DNA of 64,000 bases from Gekko japonicus (taxonomy: Eukaryota). Under the pieces are notes generated by a model, which had not been told where the DNA came from, did no database searches, and worked only from the letters and a program-made list of their open reading frames with translations. The translations under genes were made by a program, and so were the position numbers. Of the stretch, positions 45,401 through 61,700 are shown one piece after another. Position 1 is the stretch's first letter; every line of letters starts with the position of its first letter. The stretch lies in NCBI RefSeq assembly GCF_001447785.1, contig NW_015163100.1, positions 679,408-743,407 of the forward strand. Direction: 5' to 3'.

Positions 45401-46829
45401 CTACAACAGCTTGTCCACCTCCGTCCGCTGCAGCCAGAGGGGCTCCTGCTTCTCACTCTGCAGCTCTTCGACGTGGTGGGCGCTGCGGCAGTGCTGGGCC
45501 ATTTCGCAGCCGCTGCTGTGCAGCAACCGGCAGCTGCCGCAGCAGGACGAGGGGAGCACCCCTGGGAGCAGGCACGAGTGCAGATTGTAGCGGGGGAGCT
45601 CTGGGCCTGCCACCCCCGAGCCCAGCCCCTGCGCTCGCCGCAGGACCACGGGGCTCAGCTGGGGACTCCTCGGCTGCCTCGCAGAAGGAGAAGCTGGGCT
45701 GCTGGCGCCGTGCGGCTGAGGGCTGGGGCTGCTGTAGTGGGGGCTGGGGGACAGGAACCGGCTTCCCGGCTGCGCGGGGTAGTCCGTGTCACTCGACCTG
45801 CTGAGCTCCCGCCTCAAGGAGATGAAGGAGAAGGAGGTCTCCAGATCAGGCCCCTCGGGGGCCATGAGCCCATTCCCGTAGGGCTGCTCTGGGCCAGGCC
45901 CCCACAGCTTGCTTCGGCCCTCCGGCAGGCCCTGGGGGCTCCTCACAAGAAGTTCCTTGCTCCTCAGCCTGGGGCTGCTGCTGCGCTCGTAGGGGGCAGG
46001 TGGATGCTGAGGCGGGACCCTGGGTCCTGGAGGCTCACAATAGGGGTTCAGTGCCTCGGGGCTCTCCCTGTAGAGGTCGACCCCGTCGGCTGGCTCCCCG
46101 CAGAAGTCTTTGTCCCTGGGCCAGCAAGCCAGGCTCCGCAGCTTGGCCACACAGCCCTCCAGGCCGCCCCTGGCCTCCTTCCGGGCCTGCAGCAGCTCTT
46201 CAGAGGAGATGCCGCAAGGCTCCACCTCCTCCACGACCTTGGCCAGGATCTCGCACTCCACCCGGGCGGCAAAGAAGCTGCCAGCGACACGGAGTAGGCC
46301 GCCCCCCGGTGGCAGCTGAGAAATCACCAGGTGGAGGTTGTCTCTCTGGACGTAGCCCATCCGGTGGAAACTCCTGGCAATGTCGGCCTCGGAGAGCACC
46401 CCTTGGAGGACGTGCACGTAGACGCCTGAAAAGGTCTGCAAAGAGAAACACCCGTCAGTCCCCTGGCCCGCTCTTACGTCTCCCCTCCTTCCAGCACCCA
46501 ACTACCCCAGCAATGCTCACTTTTATGGTGCTAAATTCTTTCCGCCAGGGGAAGAAGTAAAGATGGACAGCGGCCAGCTCCAGCACCTCAAAGGCTCTGC
46601 AGAGGTTCCGGAGGGCCACGCCCAGGTCCAGCTGTCCCCGCAGGGCCCCCGCAATCATGGCAAAGGTGTCTTCCCCTTGCAAGGCACCGTGCAGCTCTGG
46701 GTCCTCCAGCAGCTGACGCCACATCATCTGTTTCAGGGATGAGTCTGCACACACTCCTGTGTGGCCCCTGCGGAAGTCCCTCTCCAAGCAGCGGCGGTAT
46801 TCCTCCTGCAGCACAGTGCCGGGATTCAT
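45401..46829 (-). CDS. SPATA2L: Spermatogenesis-associated 2-like; exons 46829-46521 and 46435-45401 (~447 aa)
   Basis: PUB-like N-terminus (EEYRRCLERDFRRG...AFEVLELAAVHLYFFPWRKEFSTIK|TFSGVYVHVLQG) and Cys/His C-terminal region (HSCL...CCGSCRLLHSSGC...CRSAH). Phase-0 intron aaa|gtgagc...ctgcag|acc. Confidence 0.94.
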
Positions 46830-50090: not shown

Positions 50091-50524
50091 TTTGGTGATA
50101 GTGAGATATTGAAAAAATGGTATTTAGCAGAGATAAGAGTAAAATAATTCAGACTGAGACTCCATGTGTGATTAAAATATAACGTTTTTACTAAATTCTA
50201 GCATGGGGAAGGGTAACTGGGATGAAAATAACAACAGAGCTAAGTTCCCTACATCCTTACACTACAAAGACAAAACTAGAAGAGGGAGAGTATGGCTGCT
50301 CTTCTTCTTCTTCAGAACACCAAACAAAGACGGGAAGAGGAGCCATAAAATGGTAATACACCTTGACACTTTAGTCCCAATCAAATTCCTGGATCAGGGA
50401 GAAAATTCCCGGGCAATCCACATCTAAAGAACATTGGTTACATGAGAAACCTGTGACTTCCTGTGAGTAACATAAACATTTAACCCCAGATATACTGAGT
50501 GTTTTCAACTTGTAATACCCAACA
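50091..50524. mobile_element. Probable solo LTR (~430 bp) in the first intron of the SDR-like gene
   Basis: Same family as 4313-4528; ends in ...aatacccaaCA; no internal ORF. Confidence 0.55.
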
Positions 50525-51122
50525 AACCTCCCTGCAGGGACCGCCCAGAGGAGCCTGCCAACCTAGCAGTTCGAAAGCAAGAAACTGCAAGTAGATAAAT
50601 AGGTACTGCTTCGGTGGGAAGGTAACAGCGTTCCGTGCACCTTGGTGTTGAGTCATGCCAGCCACATGACCACGGAAACGTCTTCGGACAGCGCTGGCTC
50701 TTCGGATGGGAAACGGAGACGAGCACCACACCCTGGAGTCAGATTCAAATGGCTTTCAAGCAAGGGAAACCTTTACTAGAATCCTGTTACGTCTCTCAAC
50801 AGGGAAGCTGCTTTGGAGCAGTTTTGATGTTGTGCAACCCGCGACAAGCCCTGCGGTCATTTCATTTCACCCAGAGAAGCAGAGCTGACAGCAGAGGAAG
50901 GAGCGGCCTGCCCCGCTGCCTTTGTGTCTGCCACTCTCTGTCCAGGGGACCCACACAGCCTCCATCTGCCCAGCAGAACTGGGGAGGGGGGGCAGTGGGT
51001 GTGCCGTGGAGGCGGAGCTCTTGGAGGCTTTCGCTGCCTGCCTGTGTGTGGGATCTGCTGCCCCACTTCTCCCACAGTGACCTTCTTCCAAACGGGGGAT
51101 TGATCTCCCTCCGTGTGCCAGG

Positions 51123-54100
51123 ATGTCAGTATCGGAGCGGGTGGCGGTGGTGCTCGGGGGAGCCGGGACAGTGGGCTCTGGGATCGTCAAGTCGCTGCTG
51201 GAGAAAGGTAAGGGCCGTTTTGTCAAAATGCTGCTCTCCAGACAGAGCCTGGGTCGGTGCGCAGTTGCCCTATATGTGTGGATGCGTGCGCAAAGGGTAT
51301 ACGAACGTGTCATTCTGTGGTGGTAGGATCCCGCAGCTGGTGGTCCAGTTCTACCAAGAGGTGCTGGAGCTCAAGGCTGCCTTGGAAGCTTTGAGCCTCT
51401 GTCCTCAGATGATATTGCGCGCGCGCGTGTGTGTGTGTGTTTTGGTATGGAGTGGCTAGCATCGGGGCACATGCCTAGAGGTACTCTGGTCTGGGGCTGG
51501 GCCCTACCTTTCTAAACCACCCCCAAAGTCAAGTCCCAGTTAAGGAGTGGCAGCAGTCAGTGAGAAGTGGGGATTAATGTGTGCCCGCGCCCCCCCCCCC
51601 CCCCCGGTCTTGATGCTCTGCCGTCTGTACAGGTTTCCAGGTTGCCGTCATCTCCCGGGATGGAAGCAGGTTGGAGAAACTGAAACATTTTTTGCCAGCG
51701 TCGCTCCAGGGCCGCTTGCACACCCTCGTTGGGGATGTGGGTAAGGGCTTGCTTGGTTGCAGCTAGGTGGGCGGTGCTGGGGAAGGCAGCTTTGTCTGTG
51801 GTGAAGAGAGCCCTCCCCCTCCCGGCTCACGAGGAAGTCTGGGGGGGGCAGGCATGGGGGGGCTGGGCACCAGCAGGGCAGTCAGCCAGCCGGTTGGCCA
51901 GCCCACCCATGCCTGCTTCCCCCTCTCCGTGTTGTGGTTTGAAGGTGGCCGCCCAAAGGGCATCGGGCAGGTAAGCATGAAATTGGAGGACACTTCCCAA
52001 TTGGGATTTCTAGGCAGTTTCATTTCAAATCCAGGAGATATTGTTAAGAAAGTTATGCCCCGTTTTTGTAAAGTACAAAGTATTAACTGGCCACTCCCCC
52101 CCATTTCAGTCGCATCCAGTGTTCCCTCTAAGCTGAGTCAGTGTGAGCTAGCTCACAGTTTTTTAGCCTCCAGCTCACACATTGTTGCCTCCGCTCAGGA
52201 AGGAGGGCTCCAGAGAGCAAACGAATTTACGCAGCAGCCGAATCGCTTGCTCACAACTTTAATGCCAGTAGCTCACAAAGTAGAATTTTTGCTCACAAGA
52301 GTCCACAGCTTGGAGGGAGCATTGGTAGTTTAGGTGTCCCAAGTACAATACCACGAAGAGAAGTGTGAATTCAAAACAGCTGTTGAACTGGGAGAAATCC
52401 TTTAATTCTCTTGAATTCAGTTCAGTCAGATGAACGGCCTCCTAAACAGAGCGAGTTTCGGGTCACGCCCTCCACTTTAGCAGGCTTCACGCCTTGCTGA
52501 ACACCAGTCTGGGGCTCCTTTGTGGAACGTGGATTCGTGGGGGGAGGAGCTTCCTTGTGACTAGAGCCCCTCTTAGCAGATGGGCTGGTGTGGGGAGTGT
52601 GTCCCCAGATCAGACGCAGGCACCCGTGGGTGTACAGGTCCAGGGTAGGGAGGGGGGAAGTTGTTGACGGAGGAAATGGGCAGGGATGCAGCCAGTCCCA
52701 TTTCTGCCCAAATCTCTGCCCTTCCTCCTCCTCTGTGGCTGTTCCCGGTGATGGAGAGGAATGCTTCCCCTTGCACCCCCTCCAGGTTCCGAAGAGGGAG
52801 CCGAAGCAGCCCGGGAGGCCGTGCTGAAGACCCTGGGGAAGGTGACAGATGTGGTGTCCTGCCTGGGCTTCAGCTGGTGGCAAGAGGGGCCCCCTCACAC
52901 CCAGTCACGGGAGGAGCTGCAGCGGGTGAGTGGGGGGGGGCACGGAAGGGGAGCTGCTGCTGGTGCTGCTGCTGGGGGGGGGGACGGCAGTGGTTAGGGC
53001 TGAGCATCGGATCTCTCTCTGTGTTGCATTTTGTCCTGCAAAGCTGGGGGAGGGAAAGGGGCTGTCCGTTTGCAGGGCTGACATTTCCTCTCGTGATTTT
53101 GCTGGAGAAGCGGTCTGTCCTTTGCTTCAGCCTGGAGAATCATCACTCCCCATGCCTTGCTTGCAGGTCTTGGACACGCTGCTTCTCAGCACCTTCACTT
53201 CCTGGAAGGCTTTCTTCCCCTTGGTCCGGGACGACCCCAGTGGCTCCTACACCCTCATCACAGGTGAGAGGGACTCTCTTGCCCAGTAGTGGAGGAGGCT
53301 TGCAGCCGCTCGTGTGTGCCACTTTCCACTGGAGGCAGGAGGCACTCATTGCTTTCTACGTGCAGGAACGGAACTGGGGTGTTCAGTCACTGCAGGCCTG
53401 GGCACATGAGCAGAGAAGTGCCCCTTCCTCTAAAGTGACAAAGGGGAGGGGATACGTCTCCCACTAGGCTGTCACGACACACCCTTTCCAAAGACTAACA
53501 GTGGGGCATCTCCCTTCCAGGGGGGGCCGGCGAGCGTCTCCTGCTGCCAGGCACTGGTTTCCTGACCCTGGGGGCAGCAGGGGCACTGGCCTTCTGCCGG
53601 GTGCTGCGTGAGGAGTACCCAGAGATTCCCTGCAAACTGAACGAGGTCAGTGCTGGGCCTTGAGGCCCTGGAGGGTTGGGCAGGTTTCCCTCCCCGTTCT
53701 TTTGAGTATTTGCAGGATGCTTCAGGTGTCTTTGTCCCTCTAAAAAGGCCAAAGGGCCGCTGCTCCCAGGGAGCTCAAGGCGTGCCAAACTTGCTTTCTT
53801 GGTGCTCTTAAATTCTCCTCCCTCCACACACACCCTAACTGTGCATTCACATGAAGCTGCCTTATACTGAATCGAGAACCTGGATCCATTAAGGTCAGTC
53901 TTGTCTACTCAGGCTGGCAGCCGCTCTCCCGGGTCTCAGGCAGAGAAAGGTCTTTCACATCACCCACTGCCTGGTCCTTTTTAACTTCGGGGCTCTGCCG
54001 GAGATTGAACCAGGGACTCTTCCACTGAGCTACAGCTGCTCCCAATGAGGACAGTTTGCTGGGGGGGGGGGGGCAAACACCATTCCAGGCCCCCAGCCGG

Positions 54101-54426
54101 ACTGAAGGTGTTTCTGGCTTCAAGGAACCAGCTGCTTTAATACACGGCAGTTGCTCCCAGTGAGATGCAGCTATGAGAAGGGGTGTGTGTGTGCAGCTCT
54201 GAGTCTCTCCGGCCCACTGAAAACCACCATCCTTTGTGTGCCTCTGCAGGTAAAGATTAACATGGGGGTGACAACCCCAGAGCACCTGGGCCCGGGCTAT
54301 GTGAACCATCTGGAAGTGGGCGAGGCTGTGGCCTCCCTGGTGGAGAAGAGGCGTGTCTCCCACGCGGTGCTGACTGCTAGCTCGCCTGCCGACCTCAAGA
54401 CCCTCACTGTGGAAGGGAAATTGTGA
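51123..54426 (+). CDS. Uncharacterised atypical short-chain dehydrogenase/reductase-fold protein, 243 aa; exons 51123-51207, 51633-51740, 52786-52925, 53167-53263, 53521-53645, 54250-54426
   Basis: Six exons (85+108+140+97+125+177 = 732 nt) with GT/AG ends and matching phases give one open frame: MSVSERVAVVLGGAGTVGSGIVKSLLEKGFQVAVISRD...LVGDVGSEEG...VTDVVSCLGFSWWQEG...YTLITGGAGERLLLPGTGFLTLGAAGALAF...EGKL*. GxxGxxG Rossmann motif; AATAAA at 54820. Confidence 0.92.
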
Positions 54427-54819
54427 GGTGGCGCCCCCAGGAGGGCCCTGCAGCAGCACCCACCTGCCTGACCCTCCCTAGGACCCTCTTGATTTCCAGA
54501 AAACAAGCGTGGTTGGGTCTCTTTCTGCTCAAGATGCCACCAGTGCCGGCCAGGCAAATTTACCTTCAAATGACAGCTGGGTTTCACTTGCACCTGGGTG
54601 GAACCATTCCTTTCTGGCTTGCCCTAGCCCTGAGCAATGCATGGTACTCCCAGGCCTACCCCAGACACTAGAGAACTTCTCCCCCCCCCCACACCGGTTG
54701 TGCCCTGTTCCAGGGCTGCTGCAGGCTGTGGCCCCTTAAGACTGGATGAGGCAGGATCCCTTGATCGTCATTGTGTAGGGCCTACTCAGTTCCCCTGGTC
54801 ATGTTGTTCTGCACCACTG

Positions 54820-54825
54820 AATAAA
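54820..54825 (+). terminator. Candidate polyadenylation signal of the SDR-like gene
   Basis: AATAAA about 400 nt after TGA 54426. Confidence 0.55.
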
Positions 54826-55044
54826 CATTTCCAGATATTGACTAGAACCCCTGCAATGCTCTCTTGTGACTTTTTTCAGAGCAGGCTGGGAACTGCTGGG
54901 GGGTGGGGGGAGCATCTGCAGGTGACATTTCAGGGGCAAGAAGAGGGGAGTGTTGGCACTGGGCTGCAGCTTGGAGGAGCCTGACCACCCTCACCCAGAC
55001 TAGGCACTGTGGCAGTGATGCACACCTGCAGCAACCATTGTCTG

Positions 55045-55478
55045 AAGAGGGTTGGAGTCCCAGTCTTACGAGGAAAGGCTGAAAGAGCTGGGTCTGTTTA
55101 GCCTGGGAAAGAGAAGGCTTAGAGGGGACAGGATTGCAGTCTTCAAGTATTTGAAGGGCTGTCATGTAGAAGATGGAGCGGATCTATTCTCTTCTGCTCC
55201 GGATTGCAAGAGTAGATCTAATAGGTGGACATTACCAGGGAGTCGATACCGGCTCAATATCAGGAGAAACTTCCTGACTGTAAGAGTGGTTGAGCAGTGG
55301 AACAGTCTGCCTCGGGAGGTGGTGGAGGCTCCTTCGCTGGAAATTTTCAAGCGGAGGCTGGACGGCCATCTTTTGGGTATGTTGTAGGGCTATCTTTCGG
55401 CTGTGCTCCTGCAGAGTGCAGGGGGTGGGGCTAGATGACCTGCAAGGTCCCTTCCCACTCTAACATTCTATGATTCTA
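55045..55478 (+). mobile_element. CR1 LINE 3' end
   Basis: SYEERLKELGLFSLGKRRLRGD...RNFLTVRVVEQWNSLPREVV; tail attctatgattct. Degenerate relatives at about 15690-15880 (-) and 61960-62330. Confidence 0.9.
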
Positions 55479-58400
55479 AGTGAGCAGTGACTCATGAAAG
55501 CTCCCCCCCCTGCCACAAATTTTGTTAAGTCTTTCAGGTGCTGCTGGACTCTTGCTCTTTTCTACTACTACAGCATGGACTCATACGGCTAGCCATCCTG
55601 ATCTGTCTACAGGAACCTGTTCCAGTCACTCTGGGGGCAGCACAGGTAGCCGGGGAAATGCAGCAGGTCTGGAGAACGTTTCTCATCCCAGGCTACCTGT
55701 CTGGATCCCCAGCCCTTGACCCTTGCCCTCCTCCCCAGGAAGGTACGTGCTTTTGGACAGGGAAGAGTGCAAGAATGAGAAACATTCCAGCCCCGGAGCA
55801 GGTGGGCCAGGCAGGAGAGTAAATGCTGAACTATTTCTACGAGACGGGGGGGGGGGGGGGACCGACAAAGAGGGGGCCCCCTTCTTCNNNNNNNNNNNNN
55901 NNNNNNNNNNNNNNNNNNNNNNCATTCAGGGTTATTTTTGGGCAGGAACGCACAGCAACGGAGTTCCAGCTGGCTCCTGAGTTGGCCACACCCAGCAGGA
56001 ACTCATTAGCATAATAGGCCACACCCAACAGCAGAAACTCATTAGGATTGGCTACATTCGGGGTGTGTGGCCTAACATGCAAAGGAGTCCCTGCTACAAA
56101 AAAAGCCCTGAGTTTTGACAACAAGGTAAACAGAATAACAAGCAAAAGGTGGGTGTGGCTAATGACCACACTTCTGGTGACATGGGGGTGTGGCCTAATA
56201 TGCTAATGTGCTGTGCTGTCAGGGTGTGTGCTAATGAGTTCCTGCTGTTGGGTGTGGCCTGTTATGCTAATGAGTTCCTGCTGGGCTTTTTCTACAAAAA
56301 AATCCCTGCCGTCATTCATGTACATGGCGTGTTTGGAGGCTATTGGGGGTGGGGGTCCACTGGCAGCCAAGAGATCTCCAGTGCGGTGGAGTGGTCAGAG
56401 GGTCAGACCAGGATCTAGGATATCCTGGTTCAAATCCTCACTCTGCCCTAGACTTTGGGCCAGTTACATCCTCTCAGCCTCACCTACCTCACAGGGTTAG
56501 GTCCAGTGTTCCCTCTAAGCTGAGTCAGTGTGAGCTAGCTCACAGTTTTTTCACCTCCGGCTCACACATTTTTCTTGGCTCAGGAAGGATGGCTCCAGAG
56601 CAAACTAGTTCATGCCGTAGCCAAATCGCTTGCTCACAACTTCAATGCCAGCAGCTCACAAAGTAGAATTTTTGCTCACGAGACTCCACGGAGGCTTAGA
56701 AGGAGCCTGGGCGAGGTCCCCATTGGGGAGAAAGGCAGGGCATCAATTGCATAAATATAAACAGATGTCACGGTTCTTCCTCTTCAAGACCCGCCCCTGC
56801 AGCTGCTTTCTTGGTTTTATCTTTTTAAAAACACTTCATTCCAGGCAAGCAGTCTTCCAGCTCCAGCCTCTGGCTTGACCTGCCCTCTGATCCTTCCTCT
56901 TCCAAGCCCCACAAGTGCTCCATTTCCTCCTCCCCGTTTCCCTCTTCAGCTCTGCAGCCACTGCCCATTAGGCTGCCGTGGGCCCTGCTTGTCTCTCTCG
57001 CAAGGAGGCTTGGCAGTGGAGTGGGTTGGGCAGGTGGCAAGACACTGAAAACAAACCAGGCCTGGCCCTGACAGAGGCTTGGCCGTGGGGGCTGCAAAGG
57101 TTTCCGCCAAAGAGGTGTGTGGAAGGGTCACAGCAACGATTGTCAGGAATGCTCCAAGGTGGGGCTCCCGACAGGCACACGGGCCAGCACCTTCGAGGAA
57201 TGGTTTCCAAAAATATGACTGACCGGCTTTCTTGTAAGGATCGGGCTCCTCGAGCTTATACCGCCTTCAGGGGGAAAGGGGGCAGCTGGCAGAAAAGCCT
57301 TTTCCTCCCCCCAGCCCCACATTCCAACAGTGCCGCTCCTGGAGCAGAGTGAAGCGGAGCAAGGGGAAGAGCTCAGGAGGATACGGGTGTCGAAGGGGTC
57401 AGGCAGGGAGTGCCAGAGGACACACACGGCAGCCTCTGGCCCTTCACCTCTTCCCAGAAGGGGCCGGCAGCGGATCCTGCTTCCCAGCTCTGCCGAGTCT
57501 GGGCACATGGGCCCCGTTCCTTCCCCCACTGTGGCCCCTCCCCAGACTCAANNNNNNNNNNNNNNNNNNNNNNNNNNNNNNNNNNNNNNNCTCGACGGCA
57601 GCGCCAAGACGCTTCCAGCAGCATCACACATTCATTCAGTGTGGACAAGGTCCTTTTTTAATCTTTGATTTTCAGCAGATGATGCACATTCTCACTAGGA
57701 TACCCCACAACCACCGCAAATCCAGTCACCATCTTCAGCAGTTGTTGACCAAGCAGCAGCTGTAGCCGGTCCAGAGTTTCAGAGCGGCTGAACAGAGAGC
57801 AGCACGCCCTGCCTCGGGTTAGTGTCTGTACATTTTCCCCCTCATCCACACAGTTGGGAGAGCCAGCGCGGTGCAGCGGTTATGGTGTCAGATGCGGATC
57901 CGTGACGGTCCACTTCAGAGCCCCACACTGCCGGGGCAGCTTGCCGGGTGACCTTGGGCCAGTCCCAGACACTTTGCCTAACCTACCTCACAGGAGGAGC
58001 GGAGACCGTTGGGTCCCCACGGGGAAGAAAAGGTGTGGGGGGGACCAAGAAAGCCAATAAATAAATAAAAGTGTTGCCGGCTGAACCAGCCGTCTCCCAT
58101 CTAGCTCTAGGATTCCCACGGACGACTCCCCGTGTCAGGACCACTGCTCCACAGGGGCCCCAGTGGATGGCAGCAGGAGGGCTGGGGGGGCGACTGCCCC
58201 CACCACCCAAAGCCCTTGATGATTCTTCCTATGCGTACGGGGGGAGTGGGCCATGCACGTGGGAGCAAGTGAGGCATGGAGGTTTTGGGTTTGGGGTGAA
58301 CACTGCAGGTTCCCCTTGGTCAAGTCAAGGGGGACAAGCAGACAAGCGTCCCGCCTCCCCTCCCGCTCGCTGGTGCAGCAGTAACAGGAAGCAACAAATC

Positions 58401-58726: not shown

Positions 58727-61700
58727 CTACTTGCCGAGGGCCAGCCCGTGCAGGGATTCCACGTAGGAGAGGGCGCTCTGCAGAGAGGTCAAGCAGTAGC
58801 CTTCCTCACCAATCAGGTACCTGCCACGGGAACAAGAGAGACCGCTGTCAGTGCTGCAGGGGAGGGGGGGTTCCTGCTTCCCCCTCCGGCAGAGCCTTGT
58901 AACGAAGATGGATGCTTCCGGCAGCTGCTGCCTGAGAAGACACTAAATACAACGGGACCACGGAGATACTAAGTACAATAACAAAAACAAAATGCCCCAT
59001 GGAGAGAACATATTGCTCCGGGTCAAATACCACTACAGTGTTACTTAAAGGCATGTGTCTCAAACATAACCGCTTTGCCGTAAGGAGTGTAACGAGCCCT
59101 TGTGGGAGCATGATAAGGCATGCAAAGTGTGTAAACTGTGTGGTTCCATATGAATATACTGGCTCTGAAGAAGCAGAATCGAAACTCTCGGCCGACAGGA
59201 GACGTCAGCCCCGTTTCTCGGCCTCCCTGCAGACCTGAAAGTTTGAAATGAAGAAACAGCGAAGAAGATTACCGTGTTTTCAAGAACTGTACGCAGCCCA
59301 TTTACTGGTCTTGCTTTAGGAAGGCTTCTTTATACTTCTGTATTTGTTTCATAGTGCTTTAATCAGCAATAAGTACGTGTGGATCATACTAAAAGATTTA
59401 CTGTTTAATCTCCATGCATGATTTTCTCATTTATTATGTTTGAGACATATGCCTTTAAGTAACACTTTAGTGGCATTTGACCTTGAGCAATACAGTCTCT
59501 CCACACTGCCTGAGAAAAGGCAGTGAGGCCAAAGCCTCCCTTTGGCCCTCCTGACGGCTAGATTCCCGGCAGGCAGCGGACAAGGCTGGTTGTTCAAAGC
59601 ATTGAAGAAAAGGGGTGGGGGAGGGGGCAGTGGACGCCCTGAAAGGCTGCAGAGGGGATGCCCCGCGGGACCGGAGGCAGAGACAGGTGAGGCTCGGCCG
59701 ACAAGGCTTCAGTGCCCTCCAGAGAGGGGGGTACTTAATTTGGAGAGCTGCAGGCATGAAGCGGGCTGGCTCTTCCCGGTAAGCAAGCAGCTCTTGCGCA
59801 TGCAGGGCTGCAAGGAAAGGCTTCCAGGAAGAACTCGGCCAGAGCACGGCCAGGAAGAGGTGGACCCGATCCGGAGCTGTTCTCCAAGGCGGCTGCAGAA
59901 GCCACTCAAGGGCTGCCCCCGACTCCAGCCCGTCTTGCTGCCGAGCTGCCGTCCCCACGCCTGTTTTGTCAGATTAAGTCTCGCCCGCCTCCTGCGCTGG
60001 GTCTCGCTCAGACGCCTTCGGGGGCAGGCCGCCTAAGTGAAGCTGAGAGGATGAGATGGCAGGGCACGTAACGCCCTTCCCCCCACCCCTGCAGGCAAAT
60101 CGGGGAGCTCTGCCGTGGCCCTGGTGCTGTCCTTGTCCGTCTTCAGCCAACTGGAGGAAGAAAGGCTGAGGGCACCAGAGATCTGTGGGTGGGGAAAGGG
60201 GGGCCAGACCTCCCCCCCACAAGACACACTCCTCCTTCAGGACTCCACCGCAAGCCGGGTGTGTTCGGGAAGAAGATAGCTGATACCCTGCCCCTCCCCC
60301 CTGCTCCATGAAGGAGAGGCAAGAGGCAAGAGCCCCCCCGCCCCCCCCCCCAAGCCGGCTGGGAGATTCCAGGGGCGGGCTCTGCGCCTACAAAAGTCTC
60401 ATCCGGTTCCCAGCAAAGTCGGTGACAGGCTCCCAACAGAGATTCATCCCACAGCAGGGTGGGGGGGGGGGGGTAGATGCCACTGGTTTCAATGAAATCC
60501 GTTTCCAAGAGCACACGCAGAAGGTTTGCAGCGACAGTTTGATTCTGTTCGCACCCTAAGCTCTGCATGTATACCGCAGCCCTATCTGGACCAGTACTCC
60601 CTCTAAGCTGAGTTAGTGTGCGCTAGCTGACATTTTTTTAGCCTTCAGCTCAGACATTTTTGTGTTAGCTCAGGAAGGATGGCTCCAGAGCAGGCTAATC
60701 TGTGCAGTAGCCATATCACTTGCTCACAACTTTGATGCCAGTAGTTCACAAAGTAGAATTCTTGCTCACAGGATTCTACAGCTTAGAGAGAACATTGGTC
60801 AGGGAAGGCGCCTGCAACTTGACACGCCGCCACTGCCACTGGACACTGCTGCCGGGTTCCAAGCAGAAAGACCGTGCCACTGCCGCGTGGTCTACGCCCC
60901 CAAGGGCTTCAAACGAATCCCCTGATTTCTGAGCAGGATGGCCTTGTTTTTGCCTCCTTCATTGACAAAGAAGCCCCCCCCAAGGCTGCTGACAGCCCCC
61001 TCCCCCCCTTCCCTNNNNNNNNNNNNNNNNNNNNNNNNNTTCCCTGCCTCCCCCCCCCCGCCTACCCTTCATGGATGAACTCCTCCAAGGCGGCGCACTC
61101 CGACACCAGCTGGGGCAGGTTGCTCTTCAGCACCACGTAAGACAGGATGGGAAGCAGGTCGTCGGCTCCGCTGCGGGGAGAAGGCGAAACTGACGCTGCG
61201 CGGCGCTGCAAAGGCCCCGTGCAGCACGAGATCGTGGCCGGACCAGACAAAGACTCCAGCCAGAGACAAGGAGGAGCTGCCTTCCCAAACTGGCAGCCCA
61301 AAGGAAGGGCTCTGGCTTCGCCCGCACGGAGGTGGCCAAAAGAGACACCTCAGGAAAGCAGAGCCCAAGGAGGGGAGCTGGGGAGAGGGAAAGGGGCTCC
61401 CGCAGTGGGAAGGGCTGGCCTGCTCAAGTGCTCCGTGTCCAAGCCGCCTTTGGGCTGCCCACCACTCCTGCTGGCCAAGGACCAGAGGGCCAAGGGGACT
61501 CTGAGGCAAGAGGCCGCAGCGGCCTGGCTGCCGAGCCCCGGGAGGTAGACCGATGGAGGCTCTCCCCCTCCCCGGCAAGGAGCCCGGCTTCTCAGAGGGG
61601 TTCCTCACTCACTCCACCGCCTGCCTCGCCTTCGCCCTCTGCCCTAGCCTCCAGGCCACCTCGCTCTCCCTGCCTCCATCCTTTTGACAGGCCACGCGTC

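Follow-up and report, generated by a model that had tools for sequence, protein, structure and literature searches.

A putative NADP(H)-binding short-chain dehydrogenase/reductase-fold protein of Gekko japonicus with a conserved replacement of the catalytic tetrad

Proteins that keep the short-chain dehydrogenase/reductase (SDR) fold and lack its catalytic tetrad are a recognised kind that includes redox sensors, regulatory subunits and non-canonical reductases. Among the sensors, NmrA and HSCARG/NMRAL1 carry a GxxGxxG-type loop, have no catalytic Tyr/Lys chemistry and bind nicotinamide adenine dinucleotide phosphate (NADP(H)) as a signal rather than as a substrate; NmrA-like proteins are about 300 amino acids long and have a C-terminal extension. 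Here we describe a gene at positions 51123-54426 (+ strand) of a 64,000-nucleotide stretch of the Gekko japonicus genome (contig NW_015163100.1, positions 679,408 to 743,407; hereafter the window). Its predicted product of 243 amino acids appears to belong to a family of tetrad-less SDR-fold proteins that is uncharacterised and so far without an entry in that catalogue.

The resemblance of the gecko protein to NmrA and HSCARG lies in the GxxGxxG-type loop and the missing Tyr/Lys, and is one of features rather than evidence of common descent. The gecko protein is shorter, its nearest folds are classical SDRs, and the Pfam NmrA profile (PF05368) scores below its cut-off (17.4-23.6 bits vs 27, residues 6-48 only). 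The best sequence match of solved structure is the NADP-dependent short-chain alcohol dehydrogenase of Thermococcus sibiricus (3L77/3TN7; E = 2e-11, residues 5-217, 24-26% identity, Z = 24.3), which is also a short single-domain protein (235 amino acids), was crystallised with an NADP derivative, and has an Arg after beta-2 that matches R37 of the gecko protein. The two differ in the Gly-rich loop (TGxxxGxG in 3L77 vs GGAGTVG in the gecko), in the Trp-Trp loop, which is absent in 3L77, and in the active site, where the Ser, Tyr and Lys of 3L77 (GGGYVSTK) align to gecko G144, F157 and G161. Human peroxisomal trans-2-enoyl-CoA reductase (PECR, 1YXM) is both the top profile match (E = 6e-10) and the top Foldseek match (E = 2e-14), and the Gly-rich loops of the two proteins start alike with GGA-x-G. 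However, the PECR alignment is limited to residues ~6-139 of 243, the cofactor half, at 21-23% identity, leaving the catalytic half unaligned, and the gecko family lacks a conserved C-terminal peroxisomal tripeptide. On these grounds, no full-length similarity and no conserved peroxisomal signal, a PECR identity for the family is unsupported. Pseudomonas aeruginosa Q9HYA2 (3LF1/3LF2), described as an SDR 'containing an atypical catalytic center', has a classical fold, bound NADPH and a substituted tetrad, and it ranks near the top of the structural matches (TM 0.79-0.80, Z = 24.2), although its identity is 21-23% and its sequence match covers residues 3-93 only. The tetrad replacements of Q9HYA2 are reportedly polar or basic (Lys/Ser/Thr/Arg), whereas the gecko family has Thr/Gly/Phe/Gly at the same positions.

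The spliced gecko protein matches the RefSeq entry 'uncharacterized protein LOC107106546 [Gekko japonicus]' (P0157) at every one of residues 1-243 (100% identity), so the same model was reached by an independent annotation pipeline. Exon-by-exon scans against Pfam and NCBIfam gave weak generic Rossmann/SDR matches for exon 1 (E 0.007-0.3) and none or spurious ones (TMEM61, SRC-1) for the remaining exons, single exons being too short to be informative about the family. A phmmer search with exon 6 alone (58 amino acids) against 1.84 billion representative proteins returned 15 clusters, 14 of them at E<=1e-10, and clusters were named 'si:dkey-238o13.4' (carp, cichlid) or 'uncharacterized protein' (salmonids, soft-shelled turtle). 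Full-length relatives were collected by word searches with the carp, turtle and wombat members, each of which found more than 200 clusters, with the best 120 listed per query. Family members align end to end over the 243 amino acids and contain the motifs GFSWWQ, WKxFFPLV and PGTGFLTxGA. On these alignments, we identify the gene as the Gekko japonicus orthologue of a single-copy jawed-vertebrate gene, known in zebrafish as si:dkey-238o13.4. The initial annotation, made from the letters of the window, had called the gene an orphan; that label does not hold for a gene already predicted in RefSeq and with orthologues in nearly every jawed-vertebrate class, and the similar unnamed fish proteins that it mentioned do exist, as si:dkey-238o13.4.

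Automatic names for family members are inconsistent between species (PECR for many members, but also L-fucose dehydrogenase-like, HSD17B14 and RhlG), and the labels 'peroxisomal trans-2-enoyl-CoA reductase', 'L-fucose dehydrogenase-like' and '17-beta-HSD 14' are unsupported. Several database models of orthologues are also mis-built and were flagged (P0016, P0014, P0008, P0009, P0010): in a Coregonus model the N-terminus comes from a fused peptide deformylase (P0016), turtle isoform X2 skips exon 2 (P0014), the cichlid model skips exons 3-5, and the Ensembl-derived carp and salmon models lack exon 1 and hence the Gly-rich loop. A highly repetitive protein of 1071 amino acids from an ENA metagenome assembly (P0003) matched exon 6 with E = 1e-14 over 30 residues only, at 33% identity, and was set aside as a low-complexity or repeat artefact by its appearance.

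The SDR fold suggested in the initial annotation is borne out by profile and structure comparisons of the full protein. The RefSeq entry exceeds the cut-offs of the Pfam profiles adh_short (PF00106; 56.1 bits vs 26.6, E = 4e-15) and adh_short_C2 (44.4 bits vs 27), and the adh_short cut-off is also passed by the shark, platypus, teleost and frog orthologues. The adh_short match comprises profile positions 1-141 of 195, ending just short of the catalytic Tyr. Below their cut-offs were NAD_binding_10 (PF13460; 16.5-20.8 bits vs 27.2, N-terminal 40-60 residues only) and Epimerase and KR, confined to the first 40-90 residues. NCBIfam returned 104 generic SDR matches of at most 51 bits against cut-offs of at least 215; with scores so far under the cut-offs, no defined bacterial subfamily fits. 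An AlphaFold2 model based on a 45-sequence alignment (predicted local distance difference test, pLDDT, 87.6; predicted template modelling score, pTM, 0.89) has the strand and helix order of an SDR, including strands at residues 31-36, 57-61 and 86-93 and a helix from residue 158, with lower confidence at 94-105 and 145-160. Foldseek matched this model to hundreds of classical SDRs with probability 1.0 (TM 0.72-0.80, 15-26% identity), none of them outstanding, and VIA-align superposed it on classical SDRs at Z scores of 23-25, around 24, with a root-mean-square deviation of 2.5-3.1 A over 214-230 residues. The protein is predicted by the model to be a single-domain SDR fold with a central parallel sheet. 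A sequence check found no hydrophobic segment, and the C-terminal peroxisomal signal [SAC]-[KRH]-[LM] is not conserved in the family, whose members end in GNL (29), GKL (16), RNL (13), GKI, KNL and others. A membrane or peroxisomal localisation was rejected on these two absences, and the protein is predicted to be soluble.

In the alignment with 3L77, the Asn, Ser, Tyr and Lys of the catalytic tetrad fall on T115, G144 (with T143 adjacent), F157 and G161, respectively, and the Arg after beta-2 that binds the NADP 2'-phosphate falls on R37. A second alignment, with 1VL8, moves the Tyr/Lys register by +2, to T159/A163, and the start of the modelled helix at 158 is compatible with both registers. 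The initial annotation had assigned the Tyr and Lys positions to L158 and A162, a register that neither alignment reproduces; its claim that both residues are missing stands, as no Tyr, Lys, Arg, His, Asp or Glu occurs within residues 154-165 (G-T-G-F-L-T-L-G-A-A-G-A), whichever register is taken. The only tyrosines of the protein, at 139, 176 and 202, are not followed by Lys at +4. The cofactor half also departs from the classical motifs. In place of TGxxxGxG, the aligned L11-G-G-A-G-T-V-G18 is of the GxxGxxG/GxGxxG type, with an invariant Leu for the classical Thr and T16 for its second Gly, and in place of NNAG after beta-4 there is S89-C90-L91-G92 in the gecko and S-S-L-G in 95% of the family, the Gly alone being kept.

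We scored conservation across 121 full-length family members and found 43 invariant positions, with 100 of the 243 positions conserved in at least 95% of sequences. Invariant residues include L11, G12, G13, G15, V17 and G18 of the Gly loop, S36 and R37, V64 after beta-3 (preceded by Asp or Asn at 63), G92, S94, W95, W96, G99, Q104, W124, K125, G144, G154-L158, G161, A162, R173, E175, Y176, C181, G191 and V192; at each of H102, Q97, T143 and T159, one sequence of the 121 deviates. The segments 86-104 and 140-162, which line the former active site, are conserved at 95% or more at nearly all positions. The helices alpha-4 and alpha-5 are conserved on almost all faces, and the C-terminal third, with its short substrate loop, is the least conserved part of the protein. 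No member has an active-site YxxxK (0/121); elsewhere a YxxxK occurs just once, by chance, at Y176 of a single fish sequence. From shark to marsupial, no member departs from the replacements G144, F157 and G161, T115 lying outside that trio. In the alignments, the elements with which classical SDRs hold the dinucleotide are retained and frozen, including the Ser-Arg pair that the initial annotation had read as NADP-type, and the tetrad positions carry residues incapable of acid-base chemistry. The tetrad replacement is older than the last common ancestor of jawed vertebrates.

We put at about even the prospect, the most likely of those considered, that the protein is a non-catalytic binder that depends on the state of NADP(H), such as a redox sensor or a regulatory or scaffold subunit, comparable to atypical SDRs of the NmrA/HSCARG type. 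NADP(H) would be bound through R37 and the Gly loop, and the Tyr/Lys proton relay of SDRs would not be possible. The cleft appears to have been rebuilt from the S94-W95-W96...H102 loop and the Gly-rich G144-G161 loop; it would have been re-purposed before the jawed-vertebrate ancestor, would have been under strong purifying selection since, and may serve something other than Tyr/Lys-mediated carbonyl/alcohol chemistry. Conservation is highest and model confidence lowest in these two loops, which fits mobile lids. The helices alpha-4 and alpha-5 form the dimer interface of SDRs, and oligomerisation probably takes place through these almost fully conserved helices.

Several considerations weigh against this reading. 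With the Tyr and Lys gone, the nicotinamide ribose loses two of its contacts, so that cofactor binding is itself a prediction, and the positions of the residues discussed here come only from aligned sequences and secondary structure. Enzymatic activity is known for atypical SDRs that have no YxxxK, biliverdin reductase B among them. That conservation peaks in the former active site would be explained just as well by a real enzyme employing S94, Q97, H102, T143, T155 and T159. It is possible, and we entertain the idea with some reserve, that the protein is an active non-canonical NADPH-dependent oxidoreductase, in which a hydride would pass from NADPH to a substrate that the W95-W96/H102 loop holds and a proton would come from His102, from a Ser or Thr (S94, T143, T155, T159) or from solvent, as in SDR-fold enzymes that lack YxxxK. 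The conservation of 86-104 and 140-162, the intact cofactor-binding elements and the closest solved relatives, all of which are enzymes including the atypical 3LF1/3LF2, are consistent with such an activity. These features have to be set against Tyr/Lys positions that offer neither a basic nor an acidic side chain in any register, G144 and G161 that provide no functional group, a C-terminal third, the site of the substrate-binding loop in classical SDRs, that is least conserved and has a short loop, and the lack of a known substrate.

The conserved alpha-4/alpha-5 interface could also be read as the function itself, with the protein kept as a dinucleotide-free structural or scaffold subunit for its fold and for contact with another SDR in a heterotetramer. 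The human CBR4/HSD17B8 heterotetramer (4CQM) is among the structural matches. We consider this improbable, however, as a Gly-rich loop and an S36-R37 pair that have stayed invariant for ~450 million years are hard to explain without bound NADP(H).

Intact orthologues of ~243 amino acids were found in sharks, rays and chimaera, in Polypterus, gar, Amia and very many teleosts, and in coelacanth, lungfish, frogs, salamanders, turtles, alligator, tuatara and lizards of several families. Among mammals, an intact 243-residue copy is present in platypus and four marsupials (wombat, koala, dunnart, Gracilinanus). Identity to the gecko protein is 95% in Gekko kuhli, 82% in turtle, 79% in tuatara, 77% in alligator, 74% in platypus, wombat and shark, 73% in Xenopus, 72% in chimaera and 68-70% in teleosts. 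For a protein with no annotated function, 74% identity between gecko and shark and 43 invariant residues amount to high conservation. A tree of 45 members built by maximum likelihood resolved mammals, frogs, cartilaginous fish, ray-finned fish and teleosts as clades, with short branches (median tip 0.07) and no sign of old paralogues. Searching 185,579 prokaryotic species genomes for the motifs GTGFLT[LV]GA and WK[AV]FFPLV gave 53 pattern matches and no relatives, and thus no sign of a bacterial origin or of a bacterial counterpart bearing these motifs.

No placental mammal, bird or snake was found among the best 120 protein matches for the carp, turtle or wombat query. The best 120 matches of the turtle query still include teleosts at 56% identity, and the weakest listed match of the marsupial query has E = 2e-94. 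These searches strongly suggest absence in eutherians and suggest absence in birds, whose GC-rich and microchromosomal genes are often missing from assemblies; for snakes they give only a hint. The initial annotation had proposed loss in the mammalian lineage, having known of no coding gene at this place in human. The proposal was too broad, although no placental copy turned up among the matches listed: as platypus and marsupials keep the gene, any mammalian loss would be eutherian and not mammal-wide, and the loss in birds would apparently be separate. Together, these observations outline a history to which we give tentative credence, in which a jawed-vertebrate-specific, NADP(H)-sensing pseudo-dehydrogenase arose before the split of sharks and bony vertebrates, its dead active site was rebuilt as a Trp-Trp/His lid and a Gly-rich loop with a new role in binding a ligand or partner, and the gene was lost independently in placentals and birds (possibly also in snakes) and kept in monotremes and marsupials. 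That eutherians and birds seem to have lost the gene in parallel provides a comparative handle on the role of the protein.

The absence of the gene in placentals is probably why nobody has studied the family. In the literature searched, si:dkey-238o13.4 is mentioned only in expression tables (PMC4556936, PMC5752677) and the protein itself is not studied. The gene is repressed by 17-beta-oestradiol in brown-trout liver, being down 4.5-fold (PMC4556936), and is reduced in zebrafish brain after mild traumatic injury (PMC5752677).

The gene model was re-derived by script and agrees with the initial annotation at every position: six exons on the + strand encode 243 codons plus TGA (732 nt) with no internal stops, all five introns are GT..AG with consistent phases and a polypyrimidine tract each, and the motifs GGAGTVG, VISRD, GDV, SCLG, FSWWQ, TGG and LTLGA start at residues 12, 34, 62, 89, 93, 143 and 158. 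Exon 1 (51123-51207) runs from the ATG through beta-1 and the Gly-rich dinucleotide-binding loop L11-G12-G13-A14-G15-T16-V17-G18 to a donor GT at 51208. Exon 2 (51633-51740) encodes beta-2 with its terminal S36-R37, alpha-2/3, beta-3 and G62-D63-V64, and exon 3 (52786-52925) encodes alpha-3, beta-4 with S89-C90-L91-G92 where NNAG is expected, the S94-W95-W96 loop, H102 and Q104. Exon 4 (53167-53263) comprises alpha-4, with T115 and the invariant W124-K125, F127 and P129, and beta-5 as far as T143. The former active site is encoded by exon 5 (53521-53645), with G144, the Gly-rich loop, F157 and G161 followed by alpha-5 and its invariant R173, E175, Y176 and C181. Exon 6 (54250-54426) contains beta-6 (K187-I-N189-x-G191-V192), the short equivalent of the substrate loop, the C-terminal helices and the TGA at 54424-54426.

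To follow the transcript, public runs of the same species were mapped on 51000-54600, using Logan contigs (run X1) and raw RNA-seq reads (runs X14/X15). All five introns appear in X1 contigs as GT..AG joints at the exact predicted borders, at a depth of 21-41, and introns 2-5 are each spanned by 1-3 raw RNA-seq reads across X14/X15. One X1 contig of 464 nt is unbroken over 51000-51205 and joined to exon 2, the joint 51207/51633 being observed, and carries ~130 bases beyond 51000. The 5' untranslated region (UTR) therefore covers at least 51000-51122 (+ strand) and continues upstream, X1 contigs reaching at least 250 nt 5' of the ATG. The 3' UTR is placed at 54427-54842 (+ strand), with a single AATAAA at 54820-54825, 394 nt past the stop; a 621-nt X1 contig (contig 7) starts in exon 5 and covers 54248-54600, and its length implies an end at ~54842, ~20 nt after the AATAAA. 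In the portion of three RNA runs that was sampled, exons were covered at ~0.2-2.5x. The gene is intact, its transcript is spliced, and its expression in the sampled tissues is low.

This low read depth in the three RNA-seq runs, and the orthologue models that are mis-spliced or fused to neighbours in the databases (P0016, P0014), are what could be cited for a decaying or mis-predicted gene, that is, a chance open reading frame (ORF), a pseudogene or an annotation artefact. We regard that explanation as extremely unlikely. It is effectively refuted by the intact frame, by the five junctions in RNA-derived data, by 68-82% identity to orthologues in other vertebrate classes, and by the conservation, with its 43 invariant residues.

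Three differences separate the public runs from the window. An A>G change at 54284 turns CAC into CGC (H197R), toward the family consensus Arg; a T>C change at 54408 is synonymous (ACT to ACC); and an 11-nt deletion at 51090 lies in the 5' UTR of the X1 contig. All three are probably population variants.

Intron 2 contains a long GC-rich hairpin at 51841-51924 (+ strand), with a minimum free energy of -74.8 kcal/mol for 51830-51935 and a z score of -5.4 against 200 shuffles. About 12 unrelated Rfam microRNA-precursor models match it on both strands, all well under their gathering scores (best mir-341, 36 vs 90 bits), and no Rfam family reached its gathering score anywhere in 50500-55500. No read support for the hairpin was seen in the libraries used, which would not capture small RNAs. 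It looks like a generic hairpin or possibly an intronic small-RNA precursor. Farther along intron 2, positions 52116-52330 are a very high-copy interspersed repeat (summed depth over 100,000 for X1 contigs and over 1,000x for RNA reads) from which most reads continue into dissimilar sequence past both edges; this is a transposable-element copy outside the gene proper. A second repeat, at 53904-54040 in intron 5, is covered 13-27x by RNA reads and has a depth of 571 in X1. On visual inspection, its tail looks like a tRNA-derived short interspersed nuclear element (…GAGATTGAACCAGGGAC…CACTGAGCTACAGC…), with no Rfam match. No inverted repeats were found in either intronic repeat.

The gene is flanked by a SPATA2-family gene and a VPS9-domain gene, in line with the neighbours (SPATA2L and VPS9D1) named in the initial annotation. 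On one side, an ORF at 45401-46498 (- strand) encodes a SPATA2-family PUB-like domain (E = 1.4e-11). On the other side, Pfam scans of the long ORFs downstream of the gene gave no VPS9 match, and a later motif scan located a VPS9-domain exon within 61065-61349 (- strand; E = 4.9e-09). With its neighbours assigned to family or domain level, the gene is divergent from the SPATA2-family gene and convergent with the VPS9-domain gene.

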